This document shows positions 1 through 45,748 of a DNA stretch of 64,000 nucleotides, piece by piece. How positions within the stretch are numbered: position 1 is the first letter of the stretch; the number at the start of each line of letters is the position of its first letter. The stretch covers positions 3,844,001 to 3,908,000 of the forward strand of contig OZ116708.1 in assembly GCA_964199315.1 (NCBI GenBank), written 5' to 3'. Origin of the DNA: Orbicella franksi. Lineage: Eukaryota. A program made the position numbers and the translations under genes. The notes under the pieces were generated by a model that worked only from the letters and a program-made list of their open reading frames with translations, had not been told where the DNA came from and ran no database searches.

Positions 1-3000
1 GGACTGGCCAAATCCAAGCTGTGTGGAACTCTAGCTAAATCGTTCACGAGTCCTTTCTTCAGTAGTAGCTTCATGACATTGTTGGGCTGCACCCCCGCGG
101 CTGCTGCCGCATGTTGCGAAGATTGAGGTCCCGTCTCGATCATTGTTTGTACTAAGGTAAAGATCGCCTGTAGCCTGGAGTGTTTTGCAGTTGACTCTGG
201 TAAGCTCAAGGCTCGTCCTAGAGAGGCCTTCATCTCGGCAACCAGGACCTGCTGAGCTTCAGGTGCCTGGTGACATGTAGCGATTGTTGCAAGTAAGATG
301 CGCGCAAAAGATGGAGTGTCTTCATTGTCAGTTGGTGTGCCAGATGGAAGAAGGTGATCTAGAATGAAGGCTAGGACTGGTCCTTCATACTGTGGAGCAC
401 ACAACAAACACTTTAATGTTGCTAAGGTGATTTTGATCTCCATGTTTGCATTTTTCTATTGACAATTTTATAATTAGTCATGGTCTACTATATTTTATTT
501 GAAGCTAGAGGGAATTACACTTAAGAGAGAATAACCATTGGACCTGTCTAAGCCCAGTAGAGGGCGATCAACCAGAGGAGACCTGTGTTCGGAGAAACTA
601 CAGGGTCAGAGAACCATTTTCACTATGTAAAAGAGATGCTGATGGCAAGGACATGTTAACAATAGGATTGTCTGTACAAGAGTTAGTTTTAGATTTTGGA
701 CTTCTACCTAGAGAACTCACTAAAGGGGCAATCTCTAGATTGTGACTGCATACAGGGGTACTTTTAAAAAGACGATCCTCTACACAGTAGCTATCTGCAA
801 AGAGACTCTTCAAATTGGGATGTTTTCCTGAGGGAGATATCTGGTTATGAATCTAAAGGAGTTATCCGCGGGAAGACCATCTGCGGGGAAAGACAACACA
901 CAAGAGGCCGTTGGGGGCAGGGGAAAAGCCTAATTGAAGAGTATCTACTTTTGTGCTACAAGCTGACTAACCTCTGATGCTGAAGACAGCTGGGCAGTAT
1001 GACTGTAGTCTGTAATAAGCTGTGCTACTCCTGCATAAGACTTCACCAGCTCTGCTAACAGCTTCAGAATGGCTGACTTGGGTAAGAGAGGCTTGGAAGG
1101 TGCCTTGACATCTGGGGTTGAATCCTTGTTTTCTTCTGTGGCATTAACTTCGTCCTTCTTTTCATCAGTTTTTAATAGTGACTGTGAATTGCCTTGGCTG
1201 CTATTTTGCGAAGAATCTACATTGTATACAAAAAATACTTGCGTCAACATACGAAGTACAAGCAAATAGGTTGACTGTGAAATAGTAAATCCTATTACGT
1301 TTGATAACCACTTTGCTCACGCTTTTGCATCGTGTGTTCACACTTTAATGGCACTCGCAATGACTGTAGATAACTAGTACTAGAGGACTTGACAACTCGG
1401 AGTCCAGGAAAAACTCTCAAACTTACCCAGAGCCATTTCTTCAACTTCAACGTCCTCTCCAGTGAGTTGTCTTGTGTAGGCAGGTAGTTGACGAGCTGTC
1501 AGATTCTGCTGAGCGCCCTGACCACTAAACCCAGCTAGCAGATCACCAACTTGACCCAAAGCACGGCCGAGCTCGCCAAGCATTTGACTGTCTGAGCGGC
1601 ACATAAGGATTCCTCTATCCATTGCCCTTGCCGTGCTGTCAGACGCACATAAAACATTCAACAGATCGCAGACAACGCCATGCACCTGTTTTGCCACTGG
1701 GGGAGGTTTAGCAGGCTTTGCCACACTTGCCTTCACAATCTGAGCATAGTTCGATGGCATGTTTGTCTCTCCGCCTTCAATCATTGTCCGTCTTAGTTGA
1801 GGAGTTATGGCTAACTGTAGCGAGCTTGTAGCTACTTCCTTGAAAAGTTCAGCATTGCGACAAGCTGCAGGTCCTAGAATTCGTAATATATAATTTATCT
1901 CTTTAGCACCAGGTGAGCTTTGACTCACTCCAGTGACTGTACTACTGACACTACTGGTCGCTGACGATCGCACAACTTTCTCCATAGTGTGTTTCAAGTT
2001 CTCTTCGTCTTCCAACACATGCCTAAGGAGAAGGGTTGCCAGTGTTGTAAAACCAGCAACTGCAGAGTCTTGTGTGAGGAAAAGGAGCGCACGAGCTCCG
2101 CCTTGTTCCACAAACTGGACTGCGTACTTGTGTTCTTGAGTGAGTCTGAGACATAATTTCAGGACTGCTTGAAGGGTTGTTGGCGAGACAGGAATACTAA
2201 TAAGTCTTGTGCAGCATCTAAAACAGGATTATAAATGATAAGATAGGAAGAGGTAAACAAAGAAAACAAATTCAAATGGGACTGCTAAGAAGTACAACAT
2301 TGACAAACTCAGAGACTAACGAACTCAGCAATAATCATCTTGAGTAAAAAACGTTCCTTAAGGAACAGCTTTAAACTGGAAGCAGAAAGCTTAAAAGTTT
2401 TAAAATTCTTAACTAGAGAACGTTTTTATTCAAGACGATTTGAAATTCTGGTAACTTCATTTTTACTCGGCAATGATGTTTAGAATTCGTACAACATGCA
2501 GTTTTCAACAAATGTCATTTCCCCATCAGAAATAAGAACAACTAACAAGAGGAGCATAGACTGGATCACTCTATGGAAAAACTTGAGAGGCTCAGAATTC
2601 TGTTATCACAGATTGTTCATATCAACACTGAAAAGAGTGGAAGGGAAACTGTCCCAGCAATTTAAATCCTTGTGAGGATCTTTTAATACCTGATTACAAG
2701 AGCCTTCTGATCATCATTTAAGTGGTGAATAACCACACGTCCCTCAGTCTTCTCAGTTTTTGCCGAATCTGAAAAATACCGATAACGAACAATTACTCAA
2801 GCATCAAATAAACCTTACAAGCCTGAAACTCTCTATGGCTTTTTGCATGATCAATGTGCAAACTTCATTTTCCACGCAAATGCGGGCTTCATCCAACCTT
2901 CAAAGGAGTTATATGAAATGCTTGGACGAAATATCAACTCATGTTTTGTGATATAAAAGAATCGCCCTCAAATCAAAGGAATCTTTAAAATAATAGTTTA

Positions 3001-6000
3001 CTAAGGTTCGTAAACACCAAAAAGGTAAATATAAACCAAAGAACTACAAGGATGGTCAAGATTTCAATGAGATTAAAACGGATTACAAACAACGGCATTT
3101 GTGTCACGATTAGAGCGGTTTTCAAAACCAAACCCAGAGTAATCACTCTAGTCAATCACAAAGATAATCCAATACACCAACCAAAACTCGAAGTAAATAC
3201 ATTTACATGTAGCTGGTGCGAAGCGCGGGAAAACGTGCGGAAATGAGTTACGATTGGTTTTGCTTTTAGTTCTGATTGGATGAAAAAGTGCGAGAGTTTT
3301 TTAAGCCAATCGTGCAGCGTATTAATGCAAAACCAATTACTTTTCGATACTTAAGTGAAAACCACTCCATTGCCACGAAAAATTGTTACCTGAGCTTTCT
3401 CTGTCTTGCTTATCTTTCTTTGCTTTCTTGCTTGGCTTATCCTGGGAGGTACTCTGAGAATCTTCTCCGCTTCCTTTACCGCTAGCAACAGAGGCGCTGC
3501 TTGAAGAACTCTCTGCTTCGTCTCTTCTGCTTGTTGACGCACCACTACTGGGGTTGTCGACTGCTTCCAGCATTATAGGACGTCTGTTACCCGAGTCTTC
3601 ATTTACCTGCAGCAAAACACAATAAAATAAGAGTTCAAGCAACAGAAATATCGCGCACCACTCACAGTACCGCTCACTCTCAAACAGAAGTCATGAAGAA
3701 TACAAACAAAAATTACTCCACAATAATGACCCGAAAAATTGCTGTATAGATCATTACATAACATTACAAACATAACGGAAAATTCACCTGAACCATGGTG
3801 GAAAAGTTCACTAAATAACGCCGCCTTCCTGCCATAAATCTGGGAGAAAAATAAAAAAAAAAAACAAAACTTACTTATGACTTCTCTTTTGTGGTATTTT
3901 AAAAAGAATCAATACCAGAAAAATTCCTCTAATAGAGAAGTGATTTAGTCCAGCTCTGGTCCTCTCTCTGTCACGCAATGCTACGCTCTCAGGTTGCGTG
4001 ACGGAGAGAGGGACAGAACTGGATTAGAACTGATTCCACTGAACATGACGACTTACCTGACTCGTGATTCTCCATTCCTGTATGCTGCATCGATGGTTGT
4101 GTTGTTGTTAACATTGTAGTTGTACCAGCGACCACTTCGGTCGTCAAACCATTTCCAGGCATGAGTAGTACACTTATTGGGAAGAAAAGCAAAGCAGCAA
4201 TTCGTCATCATTTACTTCACGTTAACACACTGAGACAGATTATAATAGTACAGTTAAATGCAATTTAACTACGTTACAAGGAATTGTCTGCCAGTGTGTA
4301 TAGAAGACAGCTACAATCAGCTTGTTGTGCGTGTATGGCAGTGATAGCTTTAAGTTCATGCATTGCAAATTCTTGTTTGCTAGATTTTTACTTGCCCTCC
4401 CTCTCTTTTACTTTTTCTCTCTGTCTATTTAGTACGTTGGGTATGTGTTAGCCCTGTATGGACGCTCATGGCTGGCCTGCAGGAACACTGGGCAAACATG
4501 GGATTAGAAATCTGGCTAGGAATGGCTGACCACATAAGAGGTCATGCCAAATGATCTGTAGAGAAATTGAACTGAATGTTCACTTGTTAAATAACGTACT
4601 TTTTAAAAATGAATAAGAATGGTAATTTACTCTACCTTGTCATGAAGTTGTTTTCTTTTAGTTGTGACTGCCATTTTCTCGTGCGTGTCCAAGAAAAGTA
4701 TAAGTGGAGACAACCATCTATGAGAGAAACAGAAACGTGAGAAAGTCCTGCACTTCTAGTACTATTTTTAAGTGCGACATAAGTGGGAATCACCATTTTC
4801 AAGGATGAATAGAGGCAGACAGGGTTTCACAAAAGTGTTCTACACTACACAATATGCATTAAAACTCTTCAGAAAATAGCCCAAAGAAAATAGGCGCGAT
4901 GATTGGTTTAAATCGTGTTTTTGTAACTCGACAGAAACAGAACTAGCATGAGCTGTTGACGTAATGATGGTGCGGGCAAAGAGAATTTACATGTTGGTAA
5001 TTAAAGTAAACAAGTTGTTTCCTTCTTCTCGTCGGGGTGTTTTCTACAAGAAATACAGAACATGTTCTCCGTGTTTCTACCGAGTTATAAAAACATTCGT
5101 GAAAGTCGTGAAGAACTCGAAAAACCTGTGGAAACACTCGCCTGTCAGCTCGTGTTCCCACAGCATTTATCATTCTCCCAAACTTCCATTCGTGTTTCTG
5201 TAACTCGATAGACACACGGTACATAATATTTTCTATTTCTTAAGAACACAGAGGAATACATACACTGGTGTAGTAGCAGTATTTCCCATCAACTTGATTT
5301 GTACGAGATTTGCCTGGCACAGTTCAAGTAGCTCTAGTAATGAGTTCAGGATGCCAAACTTCTCAACAATGGCTTCACATTGAAACTTCTTCTCCTGTAA
5401 AACAAAATATTCAGGGCAAGGAATGTTTTTAATTTTTCATGGCAACACTTAACACCAACATACACTTTGTACACATACTAGTAAACTACGTACTTCAAAT
5501 AATAAGCAAGTGAGATGCAGAAGAGAAGACAAGCGTGCAGCTTCAGGTGTAGAATTCAGCTGTGACATACTCTCCTCAAGTTGCTTGGTGTCAGAACTTT
5601 GGTTAGTGCAAGACTTCAAAACAACCCCAATGTCCGTTGTAAGCTGCAGAAAAACAAGACTACTCTAATAAGGAAATAATTTCACAAACTCAGCAAACAA
5701 TGTCAAACAAAACATGCAAAAGTTATAGTCTGAAATATCAATCTTAATGTTCCTGATGTGGAATCAATCAGTGACTACTCATAAACTCTCATCAGTCATA
5801 TAAGCGAAATGCAGAGGTTTCATTAAGGGCTAGGCAACTGACAAATCGACCGGCTGTGAGGATGATATTAACTGCCTGGTTTGATCATCTATTAAAAGGA
5901 AAGCTTTTCTTATAAAGAAATTCCGTTGAAAAAGCTTTTTCCCGCATGGAAAATCCAGTTGCCCTCCTATTGAAAACGTCAATGAAACTCCTGCAAAATG

Positions 6001-9000
6001 GCAAGTAAACGTTGCTAAAAGACAGGGAGAAACACAACACCTGTTTTAAAACATGCATCATTGTGCTCTGCTTCCACTCCTCGCCATTACGCTGCGCCAC
6101 CACAGAGAGAACATCACAAGCTTTGAAGACAGTTCCTGGCATGCCAGTCAACACTTCAAGACAGCCTTGCAGCATGCCGGCAGTAAACTGATCTAGCACG
6201 GTCTTCTCCAAAGGAGTGGAATCATCACCATTGTCATCACCTTTTTCGTCTTTTTCTTTATCCTCTATTGTTTCTTCTACCTTCTTTGTTTTAGAGCTTG
6301 TCGCAGCAGGGGCAGCAGCAGAAGTGGTGTCAACAACAGCACCAGAAACAGCAGGGGCAACAGCAGACTATACATAAGTGAAAAGAGGTCCAGGGTCTTA
6401 ACATTACAAGTCTAAGGGTATTGCCATCGCACAAACATTTCAATCGAATCCTTCAACGTGGCTAAACTATTGAAATAATCCAACTGGCCAGGAGAATACA
6501 AGCAGTAATAGCAGAAAATTATATGAAGAGGAAATTCTTTAATGTACCAGCTTAGTCCAGGATGCACCTGCAATGTATGACAAGCAATCCAACGATGCAA
6601 AACTACTGGTTTGAATTAATATAGCATTGGTTTTACGAACAACACCACGAAAGGACATGGAGCTGCAGATACCGGCAATGCTTCTACTGTTACACACAGA
6701 TAACTTGCACCTGTAGAAAACATCGGTTTTCAATTCTGTTCTTCAAAAATACTCAAGATTGTAAAACAATAGCTATAGTTCTCAGATGACAATACTAACT
6801 TTTGGAAACCCAAGGTAGGTACATGAACATGTATAGAGAAACCATTTCCGTTCATCATTGTGGCATTGTTGTACTAGCCTGAAAACACAGCTTTTGTTTC
6901 ATGCTGTGAAACAAAAGCTGGAAATCTGTCTGTGTTTGCAGGTTATTGTTGTTGTACCTGATCTTCAGCAGGGGTGTTTGTTATGTCCTGTCCTAGCGAC
7001 ATTGCTATGGCCCTCATCATTTGATCTTCTTCTAACATGTCATAATCCAAGCCAAGCTCCTAACAAAAAAAAAATTGTGATGTCATTTAACATCAAAACT
7101 TACACTTGACTAAAGCACGATGCAAAGAGTACCACACAACACCTACCCTTGCAGGTGGCGGTGGAGGGTGAGTCAAGATGTAATCAGTAGCCTCCTCAAG
7201 GCTGCCTGTGCTCAGCAGGGCCAGTCTAGCATGTTCATGAGTGAAACCCATGTCTATAAACTGAACAAGCAATAGGCTCATTGGTAACTAACTAGTAATA
7301 TATGTCACCATCCAAGAAGCTTTAAATGAAATGCAATGTGTGGTACTGCACACTGCCAACAGCTTTCATATAGACCGTGACATACTAAGGTTTCATCCTC
7401 AGACTCAAAAGTAAGAGCCACCCTATACAACTTAACGAATCAAAATAAACACTATCACATTAAATATTTCCCAGTATCTTTCAGCTACGTGTATATAACT
7501 GGTCATAACTGGTCTGGGAGCTAGGGGAACAGTTAAATAGATCTGACGATGGCCTCCACAAGCTAGTAAAATGAAAGCACACCAGTAGGTATACTGTACC
7601 TGCTGTAAATGCCGCATGTTGATCTCAGGTTGGGCACGTGAAGGTTCATCAGCAGGTCTTGCTGCTGCAGCAGTAGAGGAGCCACTTGTAGATGATGAGC
7701 TTTCGGCTACTGGTCCCAGCTTCTCTTTGATCACAGCCTCGCCCTTTATGATGTGGTAAAGTATGGCCAGCATGGATTCAGCCATGTGTGGACCGTACTC
7801 CTTAGGAAGTTTCTGTCCCCAGAGCTGTTGGACAGCTGAGAATGCTTTCTGCAAAAAGGAAAACAAGCAACCAATAGTGAACATGTTGTAAGCATAATTA
7901 TTATACAATGTATCTGGTCTTAACTGCCAGTGAATTCAAAGAAATGGGTACATGTAGTTTAACACATGAAAAAGGAATGCAAGTTGGTAGGTACAGTGTA
8001 CATATTGATGCATGTAGGTAGGTACATGTACATAATTTATATGTAGGTAGCTAGGTTTGCTAGTTAGGTACACATGTAGCTAGGTAGATAGGTAGGCACA
8101 TATATGTAGGAAGGTAGGAGGAAGGAATGAAGGAAGGAAGGATAGTGGGAATAGGGGGAAAAAGGCAAGGAAGGAGAAAAGCAGGAAAAGTAGGGGCAAG
8201 GAAGGATGGTGGGAAAACGTAACAGTTTAGGATATGCCTGAATAAAAATTATCAGGCTAAACTGTATAAATTTTTGTTTCATTCTTTGAACAAATAACTC
8301 CACAGTGGCTTACAAGCCATTATCTCATATCTTCCTAAAGGTCTGGACAGGATAACTTAATAAATACATCAGAATTCTTAGAAATAATTGTATGTACCTT
8401 TTGAGTTGCGACAAGAAAGTTGATGGGGTGGAATGGCACAAAGCCTGGCGCTGTAGATGTTTGAGGAAGACTGTGTGGAGAATCCATCAGGGTTTCAGAA
8501 TTAGACAATCTACTGACCAGTGTTAACCAGGAATCCAACAATTCCTGTGAACCAGCTAAAGGGGAAAGAAAACAACCATTCAGGAAAACAGTTCTAAATC
8601 TCAACAAGTTGACCATTGCAGAAAATGAAAATAAGCACTAGTCGTTACCTGGAAAACCTGAGTGACTAATGCTGTCATTCATGGGTGCTTTGCTGTCCTG
8701 ACTCAATACCAGTTTTAACAACCTGCATCCGTACAAACAATGGAAAAACAAACAATACATGTACACTGATCAAGAAAGAAACTAGTGGATCATTGGGCAA
8801 AAAAAGCTAAAGATGCTACTTCAACAGTCTACAGCTTTGAAATTTAGTTAGGTTTCCCTAACAGTATAATCATACCTACAAGTATTTATGCAGCTCAAGG
8901 AAAAGTACAAAATGTACAAGGCACACAATAAACACAAGACCAAGGCTATATTTATCATTTTAGTAAGACAAAACGTATGACATAACATAAGACAAAACGT

Positions 9001-12000: not shown

Positions 12001-15000
12001 ACAATCTGACTCTATTCGTGCAAAAGTTTTTAAATAATCTTACATGTTTTTTATTGTTTTAAGCACTACTTTGTTAATTCTTTTACATACTTTTTACATA
12101 TTTTTACTTCATTAATAATTTTCACACATTCTTACCTCTTTGTAGCTATATATATCTATGCAAATTTTACTTCTTACATCTTGCTTGATAATGACCGAAG
12201 AGCGGTCGAAATGTCGCAAACTTTTACCGTTTATTTTTATTGTCAAACAATACTTTTGTTGAGAATAAACAGGCATTAATTGTAGAACTGAAAATAAGAA
12301 TAAAACATCTAAACATGGTCTTTCACGTTTGATATATTACGTTGCTGTATTTCTATGAAGTTTAATGAACTATATATTTGCACACACCACATTCAGGATA
12401 TAGTCCATGAGTGGAATAAAGGTCCGTTTCTCCTCTTCAGAATTCCTTAAAAAAAAGAAAAAGAAAAAGAAAAATGCATCCATGATCTCTTCAAAAGTTG
12501 TTATGAACACAGGTCAAAAACCCTGTTGCTTGCTTTACTATGATAATTTTATACTTGATACATTAGTTATACAAAAAGGTTTGCTACCAGTTGCTACTCA
12601 GAGATTTGTAACAAATTGACCAGTTTGATGTCTATAATGAAAAGACTGTCCACTAGACCATAAACCTGGTAATGCTACTTTTTGTATCAAGCACTCATTC
12701 ACAGATGTGAATGCTTTGCTATGTTTCCCAACTCTGTTCATTCACACTTCTTCACAAAAATTATGTCAATCTTGTAATAAAACATGGGAGAAGTTCTTCC
12801 TCCATTAGAGTATTAGCAGTCATACTTTGAGTTATCTCTGTTCTTGTCATTTTCAGCAAGGACCTTAGCAGTGCTGGTAGTGCTAGTAAAGCTGAATCTA
12901 TCTTCATCATCCTCTTCCTCGTCAGACATTGGTTCCTCAGTCACAGGAGGAACACGCCCAGAGCCTTGTCCTAATCCACTACCACTGTCCACTTCACTAC
13001 CATCTGGCTTAGCACCCATCTTGAAGCCAATGTACTTTGGGTCCCGGCCTAGTGCACAGACCTCTTGTAACAGCTGAAAGAAAGTGTTATCCATCACATT
13101 CACTGTAACACATCATGATAGAGAGATTAGGGTGCAAAACGAAAACATTTTGGGCTTGCCCTCTGAGCAAACTCAAACTATGATATCATCATCAGTCCTC
13201 ATCGCGGACACATAAGGCCTTAAAAAACTATGATATGTTAGCCTCAAAATCATTCTCACTAGCCCCCCAAAAGTCCAGCTCTTACTGTACTTGCATGAGT
13301 CAAATTTCTGCAAAAATGTTTCCAAGATAGTTCACGTGCAAGTGGAGGACAGCATCTACTAGCCCACCTGGAAAATCCACTAGTCCTGGGCTACTGGACA
13401 AGACTTTCTTTGTACGCTGCATTTATAAACATGCAGCTTTCATATCACAATTCTCTCATGGAATTTAACATACATTTATGAAAGTGTCAGCGAGACACAA
13501 ACTACCAAGTGACAAATGACTTTGCAAGGTGTAATAAAATACCTTGATTATGGCTGTCATAGCATCTGTTTTTAATGTGGGCTGGTGTCTCATCAGCTCA
13601 TCCATTGCTGTCCCAAGGTTTGAAGCAGTTTCACCTACATCAGACAAATACCTACATTTAATTCTCGAAAACAAACATCTTTGCAAACAGCTTACTTCCT
13701 TCATCCATACAACATACTGTAGGTGGACAAAATTTATCCTCATGTCACAGTAACGATGTTACAGATCGCAGCTGGGGCTCTGGCAATAACTTTTTTTCAG
13801 CTTGATTCTCAGGTATCTTTCAGGGAATGAAGGAAACAGAATAAGCTATTTTCATCCTCAAGCTAAAGGTATATCAGTGCAATATACACCCTCATATCGA
13901 TAAGTTTGTCTATTTTCTAGTTTGTATGTTGGCTATTGGCAATGTATTATTGTTGTTCAAATCTAAATGTACCAGCTTAATCCAGGATACACCTGCAATG
14001 TTTAACAAGCAATCCAACGACGCGAAACTGCTGGATTGAATTAATATAGCATTGGTTTGACAAACAACTCCATGACAAGACTTGGAGCTGCAGATACCGA
14101 CAATGCCATCATCAAGTTATGGCCTCCTAATTCTGTTAGGCAGCTAAGTTCCTCAAAGCATTACAGTACAATGACAAATTATGCTACAATTATCCTACCA
14201 AGGCTTTCTGAAGTTCTCCTACGTCTCATGGCTGGAAGGTAATCAGGAGACAACAGGACTCTGAACAACTTGTCAAAAGGCTTGCACCTCATGAATGCTT
14301 GGAGCCCTCTAGTATTCAAACACAGAGCACTAAGCACACTGGGCAATGAAGACAGAACTTCTCGTGTAGCTGGAACCTAGAACAAGAAATAAGACATGTT
14401 TGTAATCAACCTTCGACTTTAAAACATATCAAAATAAATACTCTTTAAATTAACAGGTTTCAAAATGTTCATTGACAAACTGACCTCTTTGACGACCAAG
14501 GCCTTCAGCATAACCGCAGTCAAACCATTGTCTTGGAGTGACGACAGGAGAGATGGCTCATGGAAGACATACACAGTCACAACATCAATAGCTGTTGGAG
14601 AAAGGATCAAATACTCACTCAAAATATAAATTCTCTGTGCTGTTTGTCATTGGATTATTTCATGATAAAGTTATCTTACCTGCTTGGGACTATCCACTGC
14701 TTCATATAAACAATAATGCTGTTTGTAAAATGACATTGTAATAAATCCTTTATTGACCAAGCTAGTTTGGTCAACATGACTGAATACTGGCATCATTTCT
14801 TCATTGAATGTTTTTGGATGTCAACAGTGTCTCTGTCCACAAATGTGTACGTAAAAAAAGAACTTGGCAAGCACACTGTACATGTGCTGTATCCCAAGAC
14901 CTTCAGCTCACACTTGGTCAATTAAACCACATAATTTATACTGTTGTTTTTGTTTGTTTCTAGTGTTAACCACAGAGCATGATTAAGTTTTTTGGAGAAG

Positions 15001-27239: not shown

Positions 27240-38253
<11,014 letters not shown>

Positions 38254-40466: not shown

Positions 40467-43400
40467 CTACAAAAATAAATGCTCGAGTTCCTCCAGGGAT
40501 TTCCCTTTCGTCTCCGGAAGATATATGAAGAAAAACAGCCAGCCACAAAACGAAATTCCCCCGTAAAGCCAAAACGCTCCAAAGCGAGTGATCCACTCGG
40601 TCAGCGTGAGAAATGTCATAGAAATCACGAGATTACAAGTCCAGTTTGTAGCAGTAGCGAGAGCATTCCCTGTACTACGGGCCCACAGGGGGTAAATCTC
40701 CGAGTTTATCGTCCACGGCATTGGTCCCATCCCTGGGGCAAACGCTGCTATATAAAGTACTAAAGCGACTATAGCTAACCAGGCGTACTTATAAGGACAC
40801 GCCGCATATGACCAAGTCGTAGAGTGATCTTTTTTGCTGCATCTACCGTATGCCGCACTGTTATCACTGGAAGAATTGAAAGGAATACAAGAGCCTTTGA
40901 CAGGGTTGTTCGTGGCATCTTTCATGAAGCAAAATCCGCATTTATCTTCCAAGCAGTCTAAACAGAAACCAGAGCTGGGACAACTGTTTTTGATGTAGAA
41001 AGGCGCCGTCTCGTGTACGGATATGGAGGCGTCGTTGCGCTTCGCCATGTAAAAGGCACCTCCAAGAAGAAACAGGCTGAATGTGACTCCTGCCAGGCTA
41101 CCGAGCAACAGTTTACGCCGTCCCATTCTCTCCACCAGACACACTCCTACGATGGTAAAAGCAAAGTTTCCAAATGCAACCAGGGCCGCTAACCAGATAG
41201 CGAGCTGATAACCCTGGATTCCGGACATCTGTATGATGGTGGCACTGTAGTACCTAGTGACAGAAAGCTCCAAAGATTAATTCTCCTTACCTAGCTCCGC
41301 ATTTCTCTTCCTGTTAGTTACGAGAATTTCAAGGTACATCAAGACAATAGCTTAAGATTAAATTAGCCTAAGTTCATGTCTTTTCCTGCTGAGAAATTCA
41401 ACCTGGAAAACTCCGTCTGTCCACTTTTTTTCCCTACAATTAGTTTATCCAGGGTTGCTTTCCATTCGACTAAAAATTCCAAAAATTTTGAAAGAAGGAC
41501 AAATGGTACGAAAGTTTCCACGGAAATTTTCCAGGAAATCCGAAAATTGTTGACTTTCCGAAAAGTGAACCATTCAATCGCAAATTCAGGTTACTAGGCG
41601 TTCATGTCTTTTTCTGCTGAGAGATAACTGAAATTCAACCTGGAGAATTCCATCTGTCCACTTTTTTCCCCTACAATTAGTTTATCCAGGGTTGCTTTCC
41701 ATTCGACTAAAAATTCCAAAAATTTTGAAAAAGGTCAAATGGTACGAAAATTTCCACGGAAATTTTCCAGGAAATCCGAAAATTGTTGACTTTCCGAAAA
41801 GTGAACCATTCAATCGCAAATTCGGGAAATTCCGAGAGGAAAATCAAATGGAGTGGAAATTCTCGGTAAGAAATTTTCACAAATTTGGGTATACCTCGAG
41901 AGGTTGTCCGCTTTTCCAGAAATTCTGGGAAGTGCTGTACCATTCATTCTTGGAAATTTTCGGAAATTCAACCCAGAATTTTTCATCGAGTGGATGTGTG
42001 TGTGAGGCTATATTTAAACTGTCATGATGGTTTGTCACAAAGGCAAAAGAACCCGTAAGTCGTGCCCATAAATTTACTTACATAACAGTGTTAATCCCAG
42101 ACAGCTGTTGTATCGCCTGCAGCATGCAGCCAACCAACAAAGCTTTCCTTGTCGCTGAAGTTGTCAACACTTCATACACTACGCTTTGAGTAAATGAACA
42201 AGATTCTGGAAAAAAGGATACGGTTGGATAACTTTGTCAATGCATTCAATCCGAAGATAATCCAAATTCAGCATTTAATTTTTCTTTCATTTTAATAGTC
42301 ACATATCAGAAGCTAGAGCCATCTTGTTCAGCATAATAAACAGTACCACAAGAAAGTACTGCTCAATAGCTTTCATGTGAATCCTCACACACTAGGGTTT
42401 CATCTAAAGACTTAACAGTTAGAACCACCTTGCACAGCATAATTAACAGTACCACATGAAAGTACTGCTCAATAGCTTTCATTTGAATGGTCACACACTA
42501 GGGTTCCATCTACAGACTTAAAAGTTAGAACCACCTTGTACAGCATAATAAACAGTACCACATGAAAACAATGCTCAATAGCTTTCATTTGAATGGTCAC
42601 ACACTAGGGTTTCATCCACAGACTCAAACAGCATAATAAACAGAACATTGCCGATCCAACACACTTACTGCTCTTATGCAGCGATTTTTCCTCATCACAA
42701 ACATTTTTCATGGCATCAAGTTCTGAACCCACATTCACAGTGCCTCGTAGTTTCACAAGCACTTTCTTAGCTCGTTCAGAGTAGCCTCTACTAACAAGCC
42801 AGCGAGGACTTTCTGGTAGGACCAGACAACCAAAGACCATCACAATGGATGGAACAGCAGCTAAGCCAAGCATGTATCTAGCAAAAAGAAAACAATGATT
42901 ACAACATCTCCTAGGGGATGGAGAAGGCTTTGAGTGAGGTTTTAAGCCTGTAACTTGATCAAGCCCTCCACTTTTGTAGTGACATGGATCAAATTAAGAA
43001 CATTTGTCACATGTGGAGGTTAGGTGCCCATAGAAAACACACCCTGTTTGGTCTCCGCTGGTAGCCCTAAAAGCGTATTTCAGGTTCTCTGGACATTGTT
43101 TTCCTTCAAACAAGGTTAAACCCAGCAAGATTATGGCCTAATACTAAATTGTCAAAAATTTTGCTATTTAGCTAGTCAACATCAAATTTTAGACAGACTT
43201 ATTTTTTGTGTAATAGGCCATTTCCAAGTTACCTTGAGCCTTTGCTTCAAATTGAGTCTAAATTGAGTTTGATTTGCAGACTAATTTTGACATAGAGGCA
43301 AAAGGCAAACGGCAACTGGGAAATGGCCTATTGGGTCACAAGTGGAAGTGATATGCATAACTTATTTCTCCACAGATATTACTCATGACAAGACATCTAC

Positions 43401-45748
43401 CTTTAGTGATTTGATGGCTGCTTTCACTTGTACATATATCAAAACAAACTTAAGGCACCAGAATCTTCAATAACAGTCAAAGTATTGCTTTAGAAGAAAC
43501 TCTGCCTTTTCTATCACACAAAAATCATCTTTTATGCAAGTTTCCAAGTTGATTGTAAGATCTGGTCAATGAAACCAGGTCCTCAATAATCAACAATAGG
43601 AGAGCCAGTAAACTTGGTCAATATACCCTACACCATGGCAGGTTGTCACTAAAACAAAGTAAAATGTAACTAAAGAACTGCAAGTCAATGATAATAGTAC
43701 CTCCATCCATTCTTTTTGTATGAGCTGAAGAGGCCATCAACAACTGCAGCAACAAACTGCCCACCAGTAATAAAAAGATTGTTGGTAGTGACTAGGCGCC
43801 CTCTGATGGTTGACGGTGCTGTTTCCGCAATATAAACTGGGACAGTAACAGAAGCCCCACCTGCATATAATCAAAATTGGTAATTTAAGGTGCACTGTCA
43901 CCTGTGGATTATGCTATCCACTCAATTGATACATGTAGTGTTATCCAACCTTAAACAGCCACGATGGCAGTAGTATGACATATATTTTGACTCAATGATA
44001 GAAAAGCCAGACTCTGACATGCTAACTAACTCTATCTTGGATGAGAAAAATTCATGGCATAATTTATTTTGTAGGATTTCATATTCATACATTTGGTTGA
44101 TGTGTTGTTCCAGAAAACATCCATACCCCTCCCATGGGGGAGGGGGGGGGGGAGAGTTGTTTGGTTTGATCTCCCCTCTAAAAATTTCAGTTTAGTTTCA
44201 TACTTTCCTTTGTAAATTTTGGCTTTTGGACCCCCTTCCCCCCTGGGAATTTCCAATAACCCTCTTGAGGTGGGTTTGGAAACTTTCTGGAAGCAAATGT
44301 ATAGAAATATGACAAAAGATATTAAACAAATTTTGGTTCGTATCAAGGATGTAAACATTATGGATCTCCTCATGAGGCTATATTGAGCTGAATTTTACAT
44401 ATTTGCATGATGTCATATGTGTTGCCATGGTTTCTATAAGCTTTCAGTAAATAGTCCTTTAAAAATCAGCTGTTACACATTATCATAAAAAAAAACTAAT
44501 TTGGCAAATATGTAATCATTTTAATTCAAAATTTTGAAAGTCTGTCATATTCTTTACTTTCTCTGTAAACTTAGCCCAGTTTAATTTAAATCAAAAAAGG
44601 ATCTAATGTCACCTAAACCGCATTGTGCAAATCACTCCATATTTTTTCATTACTAACCTCAAATGAATGTTGTTTTATGCTTGTGCTTGTATGCTAGGGA
44701 AAACTAACCTTACGGCATTTGAAGTGACCAGAAACAATCCTTGTAAAAGTTACACTTATTGTTCCAGCAAAAAGCTGTATGAAGTGAATTTCAATATTTT
44801 CAGAGCTCTGAATGCGGCCGAACCCCTGCGATACATCGCGTGATAGTAAAATTAAAGGAGAGTCGTGGATGCATTGCTTACAAATTGGAGAGATCTTCTT
44901 CAATCATCTGCGGGTTTTAAAGACATTTATTAACAAGGTCGCAAAAAAAAGTAAAAGTAACTGTGTGCAAACACATTATTTACGATTTTATTGATATATT
45001 TACATCTGAGTGAATATTTGCATATTCTGAGCTAGCCCTTAATTTTGGGGAGCTCAACCACGACTAAAATTAAAGCCACAAATCGCGATCACTGATGGAA
45101 ATACTAACTCATCTTTCTATTATAATTACCAATAAACTCATAGAACTTCAATACTTGATTAAATTTACCTATTCCAATGCCCACAGTGAGCCTTCCAACG
45201 AGAAGAATCTCTCTCGAATGAGCAACCCCCATCACCACAGCTCCAACTGTGAAAACCATGGCTGAAGCGACAAGGAGAGGCTTTCTGCCAAGCCGTTGAT
45301 TCAGAAACCCTCCTAATAAAGCACCAAGTATGGCTGCACCGATGGTTACGCTAACAATTAGTTCTTGCCAGAAAGAAGACAAATCAAACTCCTGTTTGAT
45401 CAGAATCATGGCGCCGGAAATCACTCCAGTGTCGTACCCAAACAGAAATCCACCGATGGCGGCAAAAACAGTTAAGAAATAAACATATAATGGAGTTGTT
45501 TGTTTCGATTCAAGATGCGAGGTTTGTATCAAGGCTTGTTCCTCGCTTTCCTTGTCATCGGATGGGGCTTGATCAATGTTTACATCCATTACGTCTCCTG
45601 TTTGATCAACGTGAAGAACTAGAGAACGATCAACCATGTCTTCCTTCATTCCTTTGGACCGAGTGAGACTGGAAAGAGAAAATATATCCAACCGGACCGA
45701 ACTTCGACCTTTTGGAAAGACGGACTTCATCGTTTTCGTTTCACCCAT
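40467..45748 (-). CDS. SLC2A13: Proton myo-inositol cotransporter (HMIT/SLC2A13-like MFS sugar porter), complete
   Basis: 5 in-phase exons: 45169-45748, 43701-43860, 42669-42877, 42082-42205, 40467-41253. Motifs [55 protein letters not shown] and the Cys-rich exofacial loop typical of HMIT. Confidence 0.93.
41372..41830. repeat. Tandem duplication (~230-240 bp unit) overlapping a GGGTTGCTTTCCATTC-type repeat
   Basis: GTTCATGTCTTTT starts at 41372 and 41600; near-identical blocks through ...CCATTCAATCGCAAATTC. Confidence 0.8.
42328..42642. repeat. Minisatellite, ~106-bp unit, about 3 copies
   Basis: AGCATAAT(A/T)AACAG recurs at 42330, 42436, 42542 and 42630. Confidence 0.85.

Follow-up and report, generated by a model that had tools for sequence, protein, structure and literature searches.

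The stretch of DNA considered here, hereafter called the window, comprises 64,000 nucleotides (nt) of the coral Orbicella franksi (assembly GCA_964199315.1, contig OZ116708.1, positions 3,844,001 to 3,908,000), and its minus strand carries a HUWE1-like gene, one intron of which contains a candidate box H/ACA small nucleolar RNA (snoRNA) at window positions 6540-6682. In our opinion, this element is very probably a box H/ACA snoRNA, most likely the coral orthologue of vertebrate SNORA8/ACA8. The host intron (6368-6957, minus strand, GT..AG) is delimited by the spliced joint 6367/6958, which, like the neighbouring joint 7058/7146, was found in RNA contigs of four runs. As both joints have GT..AG on the minus strand, host and element are read in the same sense, and it follows from the joint 6367/6958 that the element lies within this 590-nt intron, separated by 275 nt from the 5' splice site and by 172 nt from the 3' one. 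The downstream HUWE1-like exon (6041-6367, minus strand) is defined by RNA contigs and joints, and its translation matches orthologous exons of other corals. The upstream exon (6958-7058, minus strand) and the exon with a UBA domain (7146-7263, minus strand) are defined by RNA joints, the latter also by a Pfam UBA match. DUF913 (13465-13743), UBA (7146-7263) and WWE (approximately 4053-4211) follow one another in the order of HUWE1, and this order, together with the spliced minus-strand intron, bears out the initial annotation, in which the element was placed sense to HUWE1 with this gene as the snoRNA host.

Read from 6682 to 6540 on the minus strand, to which all parts named below belong, the sequence gives a 143-nt RNA with a hairpin, an H box, a second hairpin and an ACA box in this order, exactly the design that had been described for it. 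The 5' hairpin begins with a lower stem of 6 base pairs formed by GCAUUG (6676-6681) and CAAUGC (6624-6629), with all 6 pairs invariant in 15 homologues and the 3' strand supported by the alignment and by RNAalifold. Above this stem, an open internal loop contains the left arm CGGUAUCU (6667-6674) and the right arm UCGU (6635-6638) of pocket 1, and it is closed by a 10-bp upper stem with an apical loop (6639-6666), in which 95% of the alignment cells are paired, G-U to G-C changes occur and RNAalifold agrees. The hinge contains the H box AUAUUA (6617-6622; ANANNA), read off the sequence, whose first and third A never vary in the alignment. In the 3' hairpin, a bulged lower stem is formed by ACCAGUAGU (6602-6610) and its partners at 6546-6556 with a 2-nt bulge; 75-77% of its cells are paired over 15 rows, its 3' strand (6546-6556) is supported by pair conservation, and it is weak in the homologues L006 and L007. 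The open loop that follows contains the left arm GCAUCGUU (6591-6598) and the right arm UGG (6557-6559) of pocket 2, and the 10-bp upper stem with its loop (6560-6590) has 93% of cells paired, two pairs changed on both sides and support from RNAalifold. The ACA box (6543-6545), 3 nt before the 3' end, is invariant in 15 of 15 homologues, and the island of conservation stops 3 nt past it. The right arms start 16 nt ahead of the H box in pocket 1 and 14 nt ahead of ACA in pocket 2.

The minimum free energy fold of the single sequence reproduces the 5' hairpin, and the fold energy is only mildly better than that of shuffled sequences (z = -1.8), which is common among RNAs whose pockets are large and open. 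An alternative 3' pocket in the style of Rfam, with CCAG paired to an inner CUGG, was ruled out as it would be located about 23 nt from ACA. On reading the two apical loops, UGAG (the Cajal body box, or CAB box) was seen in neither of them, which suggests that the RNA is not a Cajal-body RNA.

Ribosomal RNA (rRNA) targets of the pockets were sought at every U of the coral 18S, 5.8S and 28S rRNA, with contiguous pairing required from the top of the pocket in both arms and with U-N left unpaired. As the reference, one unit of the coral ribosomal DNA (rDNA) was delimited with Rfam into 18S (1800 nt), 5.8S and 28S. The rDNA itself was observed as 8.5-kb repeats across many small contigs (for example C22 and L020) and on C10 and C15. 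Pocket 1 (CGGUAUCU / UCGU) fits 18S U1002 with 8+4 Watson-Crick pairs and takes the first rank in the scan with a score of 12; its left arm forms 8 pairs with AGAUACCG just 3' of U1002-C, and its right arm 4 pairs with ACGA just 5' of U1002. Pocket 2 (GCAUCGUU / UGG) fits U1027 with 8+3 Watson-Crick pairs and is likewise ranked first, with a score of 11; the 8 pairs of its left arm are formed with AACGAUGC just 3' of U1027-A and the 3 pairs of the right arm with CCA just 5' of U1027. The runners-up have scores of 8-8.5 and contain 4-5 G-U pairs, and for other registers of the pockets no target with a score above 9 was found in the coral 18S, 5.8S and 28S, nor anything comparable at a shift of one base. 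The pairings around ACGA-U-C and CCA-U-A, foreseen in the initial annotation, are thus the top-ranked ones in the coral's own rRNA, where both target sequences are present within one 39-nt stretch of rDNA counted approximately 1559 times.

The two uridines are 25 nt apart in coral 18S, as had been expected for the sites known in humans as Psi1056 and Psi1081 (Psi, pseudouridine). Human Psi1056 has the context A-Psi-CAG and was found by mass spectrometry to be 93% modified, and Psi1081, in the context ACCA-Psi-AAACG, to be 94% modified (PMC6182160). The contexts and the spacing of U1002 and U1027 are equal to those of the human pair, which confirms the correspondence. Shuffled guide arms equalled the observed score in 16 of 2000 trials (0.8%) for pocket 1 and in 91 of 2000 (4.6%) for pocket 2, so that each pocket alone is only moderately improbable; the targets carry weight because both top matches are uridines modified in humans, the spacings of 16 and 14 nt are right and the arms are conserved. 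Taken together, these data make U1002 and U1027 strongly predicted targets of the coral snoRNA.

Homologues were gathered with the translation of the downstream exon, which led to related exon fragments in other coral assemblies and coral metagenomes, and the contigs so obtained were then examined. The snoRNA was found in every orthologous HUWE1 contig long enough to include its place. When orthologous introns of HUWE1 in other corals were aligned together with their flanks, the 143 nt of the element proved to be 0.77-0.91 identical to the window, compared with 0.12-0.65 for the 200-nt flanks; in steps of 20 nt, mean identity climbs from 0.46 to 0.93 on entering the element at its 5' edge and drops from 0.94 to 0.41 on leaving it at the 3' edge, and the edges of this island coincide exactly with those of the element. 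Inside it, loops and hinge have values of 0.73-0.75, and stems, guides and boxes 0.89-0.94. In an alignment of 15 homologous sequences (A1), standard pairs occupy 90.4% of the cells of the proposed structure versus 32-44% with slid partners; 3 pairs show two-sided changes, two of them in the upper 3' stem, and many others alternate between G-U and G-C. An independent RNAalifold prediction contains this 5' hairpin and the upper stem of the 3' hairpin as well, with none of the four guide arms paired. Among the sequence variants in four RNA runs, none lies within 6540-6682 and 6 lie in the rest of the intron, an observation that gives weak support alone. Judged from these comparisons, the element is selectively maintained.

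The two pockets are retained to different degrees. Pocket 1 is present in all 15 copies, mostly with 8+4 pairs and in a single lineage with 8+6; its left arm is kept in 14 of 15 homologues, one of them (L008a) with a single wobble, and has one mismatch in L015. For pocket 2, 9 of 15 homologues share an identical left arm; this arm has one wobble in the second copy of the window (GCGUCGUU), one mismatch in L015 and one A-C mismatch in L018, where the letter is the same as in the Rfam SNORA8 consensus. In the lineage of L006 and L007, the 5' guide is kept with its right arm stretched to 6 pairs, and the sequence of the 3' pocket is replaced; no convincing rRNA target was found for these 3' pockets (L006:602-735, L007:585-724 and 5894-6034).

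A covariance model (R1) built from the alignment gives 154 bits for the element and 143 bits for a second copy (13965-14107, minus strand), 88.7% identical and situated in another HUWE1 intron. The changes in the guides of this copy, including the pocket 1 right arm UUGU, all keep the pairing by wobble. Two copies in one gene, together with the guide mismatches in L015, L018 and the 3' pocket of L006 and L007, could point to a decaying or non-functional snoRNA, retroposed or duplicated, with the working guide elsewhere in the genome. Such a relic is hardly probable, in view of the strong purifying selection relative to the intron background, the preservation of pairing by the substitutions of copy 2, and the result of the R1 search of the 497-Mb genome, which gave among the best candidates scored only these two copies, both in HUWE1 introns. 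In other corals, the snoRNA occupies differing HUWE1 introns: it is located upstream of the UBA exon in L006 and L007a and downstream of the query exon in L007b, and L008 contains two copies.

Metagenome contigs were scanned with a sequence pattern and the loci filtered with R1, which left five close coral matches and one distant match, L052:501-645 (minus strand; 48 bits, expectation value (E) = 9e-8); the other 51 of 57 loci of the pattern scan were dismissed as chance matches. The distant homologue has a first pocket with 7+4 pairs, a second pocket GCAUAGUU / UGG, an AAAUCA H box and an ACA box, and matches SNORA8 over the full length at 17.1 bits and SNORA35 at 15.5 bits. If the 18S of this animal has U in place of G at the corresponding position (AACUAUGC), the arm GCAUAGUU would match it perfectly. 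The homologue is intronic, between exons at L052:766-1059 and 1941-2210 (minus strand), which we take to belong to SND1/Tudor-SN; one of these exons is 61-76% identical to its coral counterpart, which is divided by an intron. The occurrence of a homologue in an SND1 intron of another animal indicates that hosting by HUWE1 would be a trait of these corals and not of the RNA family. Beside it, at L052:279-354 (minus strand), a box C/D-like sequence was observed that matches the SNORD66 model at 23.9 bits (E = 0.015, below the cut-off), and this host gene may carry several snoRNAs.

Among the Rfam families, SNORA8 (RF00393) was the best in four independent scans and the sole H/ACA family to match end to end. 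Three coral orthologues gave 24.8-25.2 bits, full-length and with the same ends. For the element of the window, the match has E = 0.36 over 4227 families and about 1e-4 for a single family named beforehand in a 601-nt stretch; a partial snR161 match (14.2 bits, E = 9.1) overlaps it. When the SNORA8 model was run against the whole genome, no match was found among the best 46 of about 35,000 candidates.

The closest likeness was found with chicken ACA8, whose sequence was taken from additional file 2 of PMC2653536; it and the Rfam consensus were compared with the coral RNA by eye only. The chicken RNA has the left arm GGUAUCU in its 5' pocket, as in coral, against 18S AGAUACC at the Psi1056 site, and a 3' pocket GCAUCGUU / UGG the same as that of coral, which in chicken starts 16 nt from ACA. 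In vertebrate SNORA8 and coral, the 3' pocket GCAUC(G/A)UU / UGG faces CCA-U-A-AACGAUGC of the Psi1081 site. Vertebrate SNORA8 is, like the coral RNA, an intronic, host-sense box H/ACA RNA of about 140 nt with similar lower stem and ends of the upper stem; chicken ACA8 reads UUCAAAAAC where coral reads UUCGUAAAAC. They differ in the construction of the 3' hairpin at its lower stem, where coral CCAG is paired with CUGG beside ACA. The coral RNA is a probable orthologue of SNORA8 by these comparisons, and the presence of the same two guides in the same order in coral and bird, with likeness beyond the guide arms, forms the chief argument for homology and for an origin preceding the cnidarian-bilaterian split, which we infer from coral plus vertebrate. 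The initial annotation had proposed that a dual-guide SNORA8 existed before bilaterians; the two guides and their order in coral and chicken agree with this, the age being deduced from these two groups.

With regard to hosts, TAF1D had been named as the host of human SNORA8, and JOSD3 is presumably the old name of that gene; we know of no case in which HUWE1 or SND1 serves as a vertebrate snoRNA host. Human ACA8 is hosted by JOSD3 and has also been assigned a 28S site that it shares with E2, the chicken orthologue was termed an orphan by the authors, and intragenic translocation was reported for the JOSD3 snoRNA cluster (PMC2653536). No match of the coral RNA to the 28S site shared with E2 was obtained in the rRNA scan. 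The difference between the HUWE1-like host in coral and TAF1D/JOSD3 in vertebrates weighs little because snoRNA hosts are known to change: like other mobile intronic snoRNAs, the coral RNA has copies in different introns of one gene between species and in different genes between phyla.

In yeast, snR31 is independently transcribed and carries its guide in the 3' pocket, and the second site is, to our knowledge, unmodified in this organism. Human ACA8, yeast snR31 and Arabidopsis snoR5 are counterparts of Neurospora Nc ACA5, the guide of 18S-Psi996, which has an intergenic gene and its guide in the 3' (ACA) pocket (PMC2780460). The yeast, Neurospora and Arabidopsis RNAs are directed to the same 18S uridine as coral pocket 1 (yeast Psi999, Neurospora Psi996) and are longer than the coral RNA; none of their families appeared among the Rfam matches up to E = 10. 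As the first site is guided from the 3' pocket in yeast and Neurospora, snR31 is to be regarded as a functional counterpart and not as a demonstrated structural homologue. Consequently, the proposed designation SNORA8/snR31 homologue is retained in its first half, by the likeness to SNORA8 and the same pockets in chicken ACA8, and reduced to functional correspondence in its second. The statement that SNORA8 guides both human sites is supported for the first by its snR31 counterpart (PMC2780460); for Psi1081, no assignment to SNORA8, alone or jointly with Psi1056, was found in the literature, though the sequences make it likely.

These facts also bear on the possibility that the element is a true H/ACA snoRNA for both 18S sites that does not descend from the ancestor of SNORA8, the similarity being due to convergence or to pocket swapping on invariant rRNA targets. 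The use of the 3' pocket for the first site in fungi, the difference in hosts (HUWE1 in corals, SND1 in L052, TAF1D/JOSD3 in vertebrates), the concentration of much of the similarity in the guide arms and a SNORA8 score under the Rfam cut-off are all compatible with it. We consider it unlikely, as coral and chicken share both guides in one order and are alike outside them: in the lower stem GCAYUG/CARUGC with one compensatory pair, in GCA after the left arm, in UUC before the right arm, and in GG..CC closing the 3' upper stem beside UGG. Full-length Rfam matches with identical ends in several corals also argue for descent.

Fourteen RNA-labelled runs from approximately 10 studies contain at least 78% of the sampled words of the element, and most of them contain all; the poly(A)-selected runs listed beside them contain none. 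Four metatranscriptome assemblies were mapped on 5850-7350, their contigs being uninformative on ends, strand and local depth. One contig per run covers the element (6340-6738, 6393-6987, 6487-6969 and 6543-6969), and only the segment 6543-6738 is common to all four. These contigs reach 11-25% of the depth of the spliced exon contigs, and the depth of the adjacent 87-nt intron is 0 in all four runs. The RNA data are thus compatible with a stable intron-derived RNA and give no proof of a discrete 143-nt species. In the next intron, at 5850-5900, very deep RNA contigs (word depth 194-1889) from many records at 90-95% likeness were observed, probably belonging to a dispersed repeat.

RNA contigs that represent unspliced intron, and conservation inside one host gene in corals, would also be expected of an element with another role, namely a structured splicing or regulatory element of the HUWE1 pre-mRNA in which the H/ACA features are coincidental. 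We consider this reading very improbable: the box positions and the spacing of 14-16 nt are correct, the top target of each pocket is a uridine modified in humans, the copies shift between HUWE1 introns among corals, and a homologue resides in the unrelated gene SND1.

Two further observations concern the surroundings. Upstream of HUWE1, at 28840-29112, 40467-41273 and 45104-45748 of the window (minus strand), there are neighbouring genes including an exon of an MCM-type helicase and a sugar-transporter (MFS) gene. Contig L005 contains at 4509-4605 a near-perfect long hairpin that matches the mir-7563 model on both strands with about 61 bits versus a cut-off of 80; an inverted-repeat element is a more probable explanation for it than a microRNA.

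Several points weigh against the identification of the element as a functional SNORA8 orthologue and should be considered together. No Rfam family reaches its gathering score anywhere in the window, and the SNORA8 match, full-length and the best among families, has 20.2 bits versus a gathering score of 38, so the covariance-model check suggested by the initial annotation is favourable in the choice of family and falls short in the score. In chicken and in the Rfam consensus, the right arm of pocket 1 is UC followed by A, giving about 2 pairs versus 4 for UCGU in coral, so part of the likeness could be due to shared constraint. The sixth position of the H box is U or G and not A in several orthologues of the alignment. 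Covariation is modest, with 3 pairs changed on both sides, as the sequences are closely related. The score of pocket 2 is attained by shuffled arms in 4.6% of trials, and the RNA contigs continue beyond the element on either side, crossing splice sites, into intron and exon sequence that is unspliced.

The biogenesis and action of the RNA may be outlined as follows. It is transcribed within the 590-nt intron of the HUWE1-like gene, as its position on the same strand in a spliced intron shows. By analogy with known intronic H/ACA snoRNAs, dyskerin, Nop10, Nhp2 and Gar1 would assemble on it, and after splicing it would be trimmed by exonucleases to about 143 nt; genes for dyskerin (DKCLD) and Gar1 are present in the coral genome. 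In the nucleolus, the 5' pocket, complementary to the rRNA on either side of U1002, and the 3' pocket, complementary on either side of U1027, would pair with 18S. Each target U and the next base would be left unpaired 14-16 nt from the H or ACA box, and dyskerin would convert the uridine into pseudouridine.

A more extended scenario may be put forward tentatively, with a probability that we place slightly short of even. The coral RNA would represent an ancestral, fully functional two-site SNORA8 of the common ancestor of cnidarians and bilaterians, in which vertebrates have weakened the Psi1056 arm and some corals have lost the Psi1081 arm, while the gene hopped among HUWE1, SND1 and TAF1D and GCAUAGUU of L052 co-evolved with 18S AACUAUGC. 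As far as the guide arms permit a judgement, the first guide is better preserved in coral than in vertebrates.

H/ACA snoRNAs evolve fast. In the 2009 annotation of Trichoplax, only U17 was unambiguously matched to vertebrate H/ACA families (PMC2655684). An RNA of coral that can be aligned pocket for pocket with vertebrate ACA8 would give a dated anchor, at least as old as the cnidarian-bilaterian ancestor, for the guide of two neighbouring 18S sites. Two pseudouridines are thereby predicted for coral 18S; the RNA also suggests the Psi1081 site as a target for the chicken orthologue described as an orphan, and documents host switching through two HUWE1 copies, differing introns among corals and SND1 in another animal. 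The view of how snoRNAs work is left unchanged, and the RNA may be regarded as an expected addition to a known class; of note are the recognisable deep orthology of an H/ACA RNA, a coral lineage that has lost the second guide, and the changing hosts.

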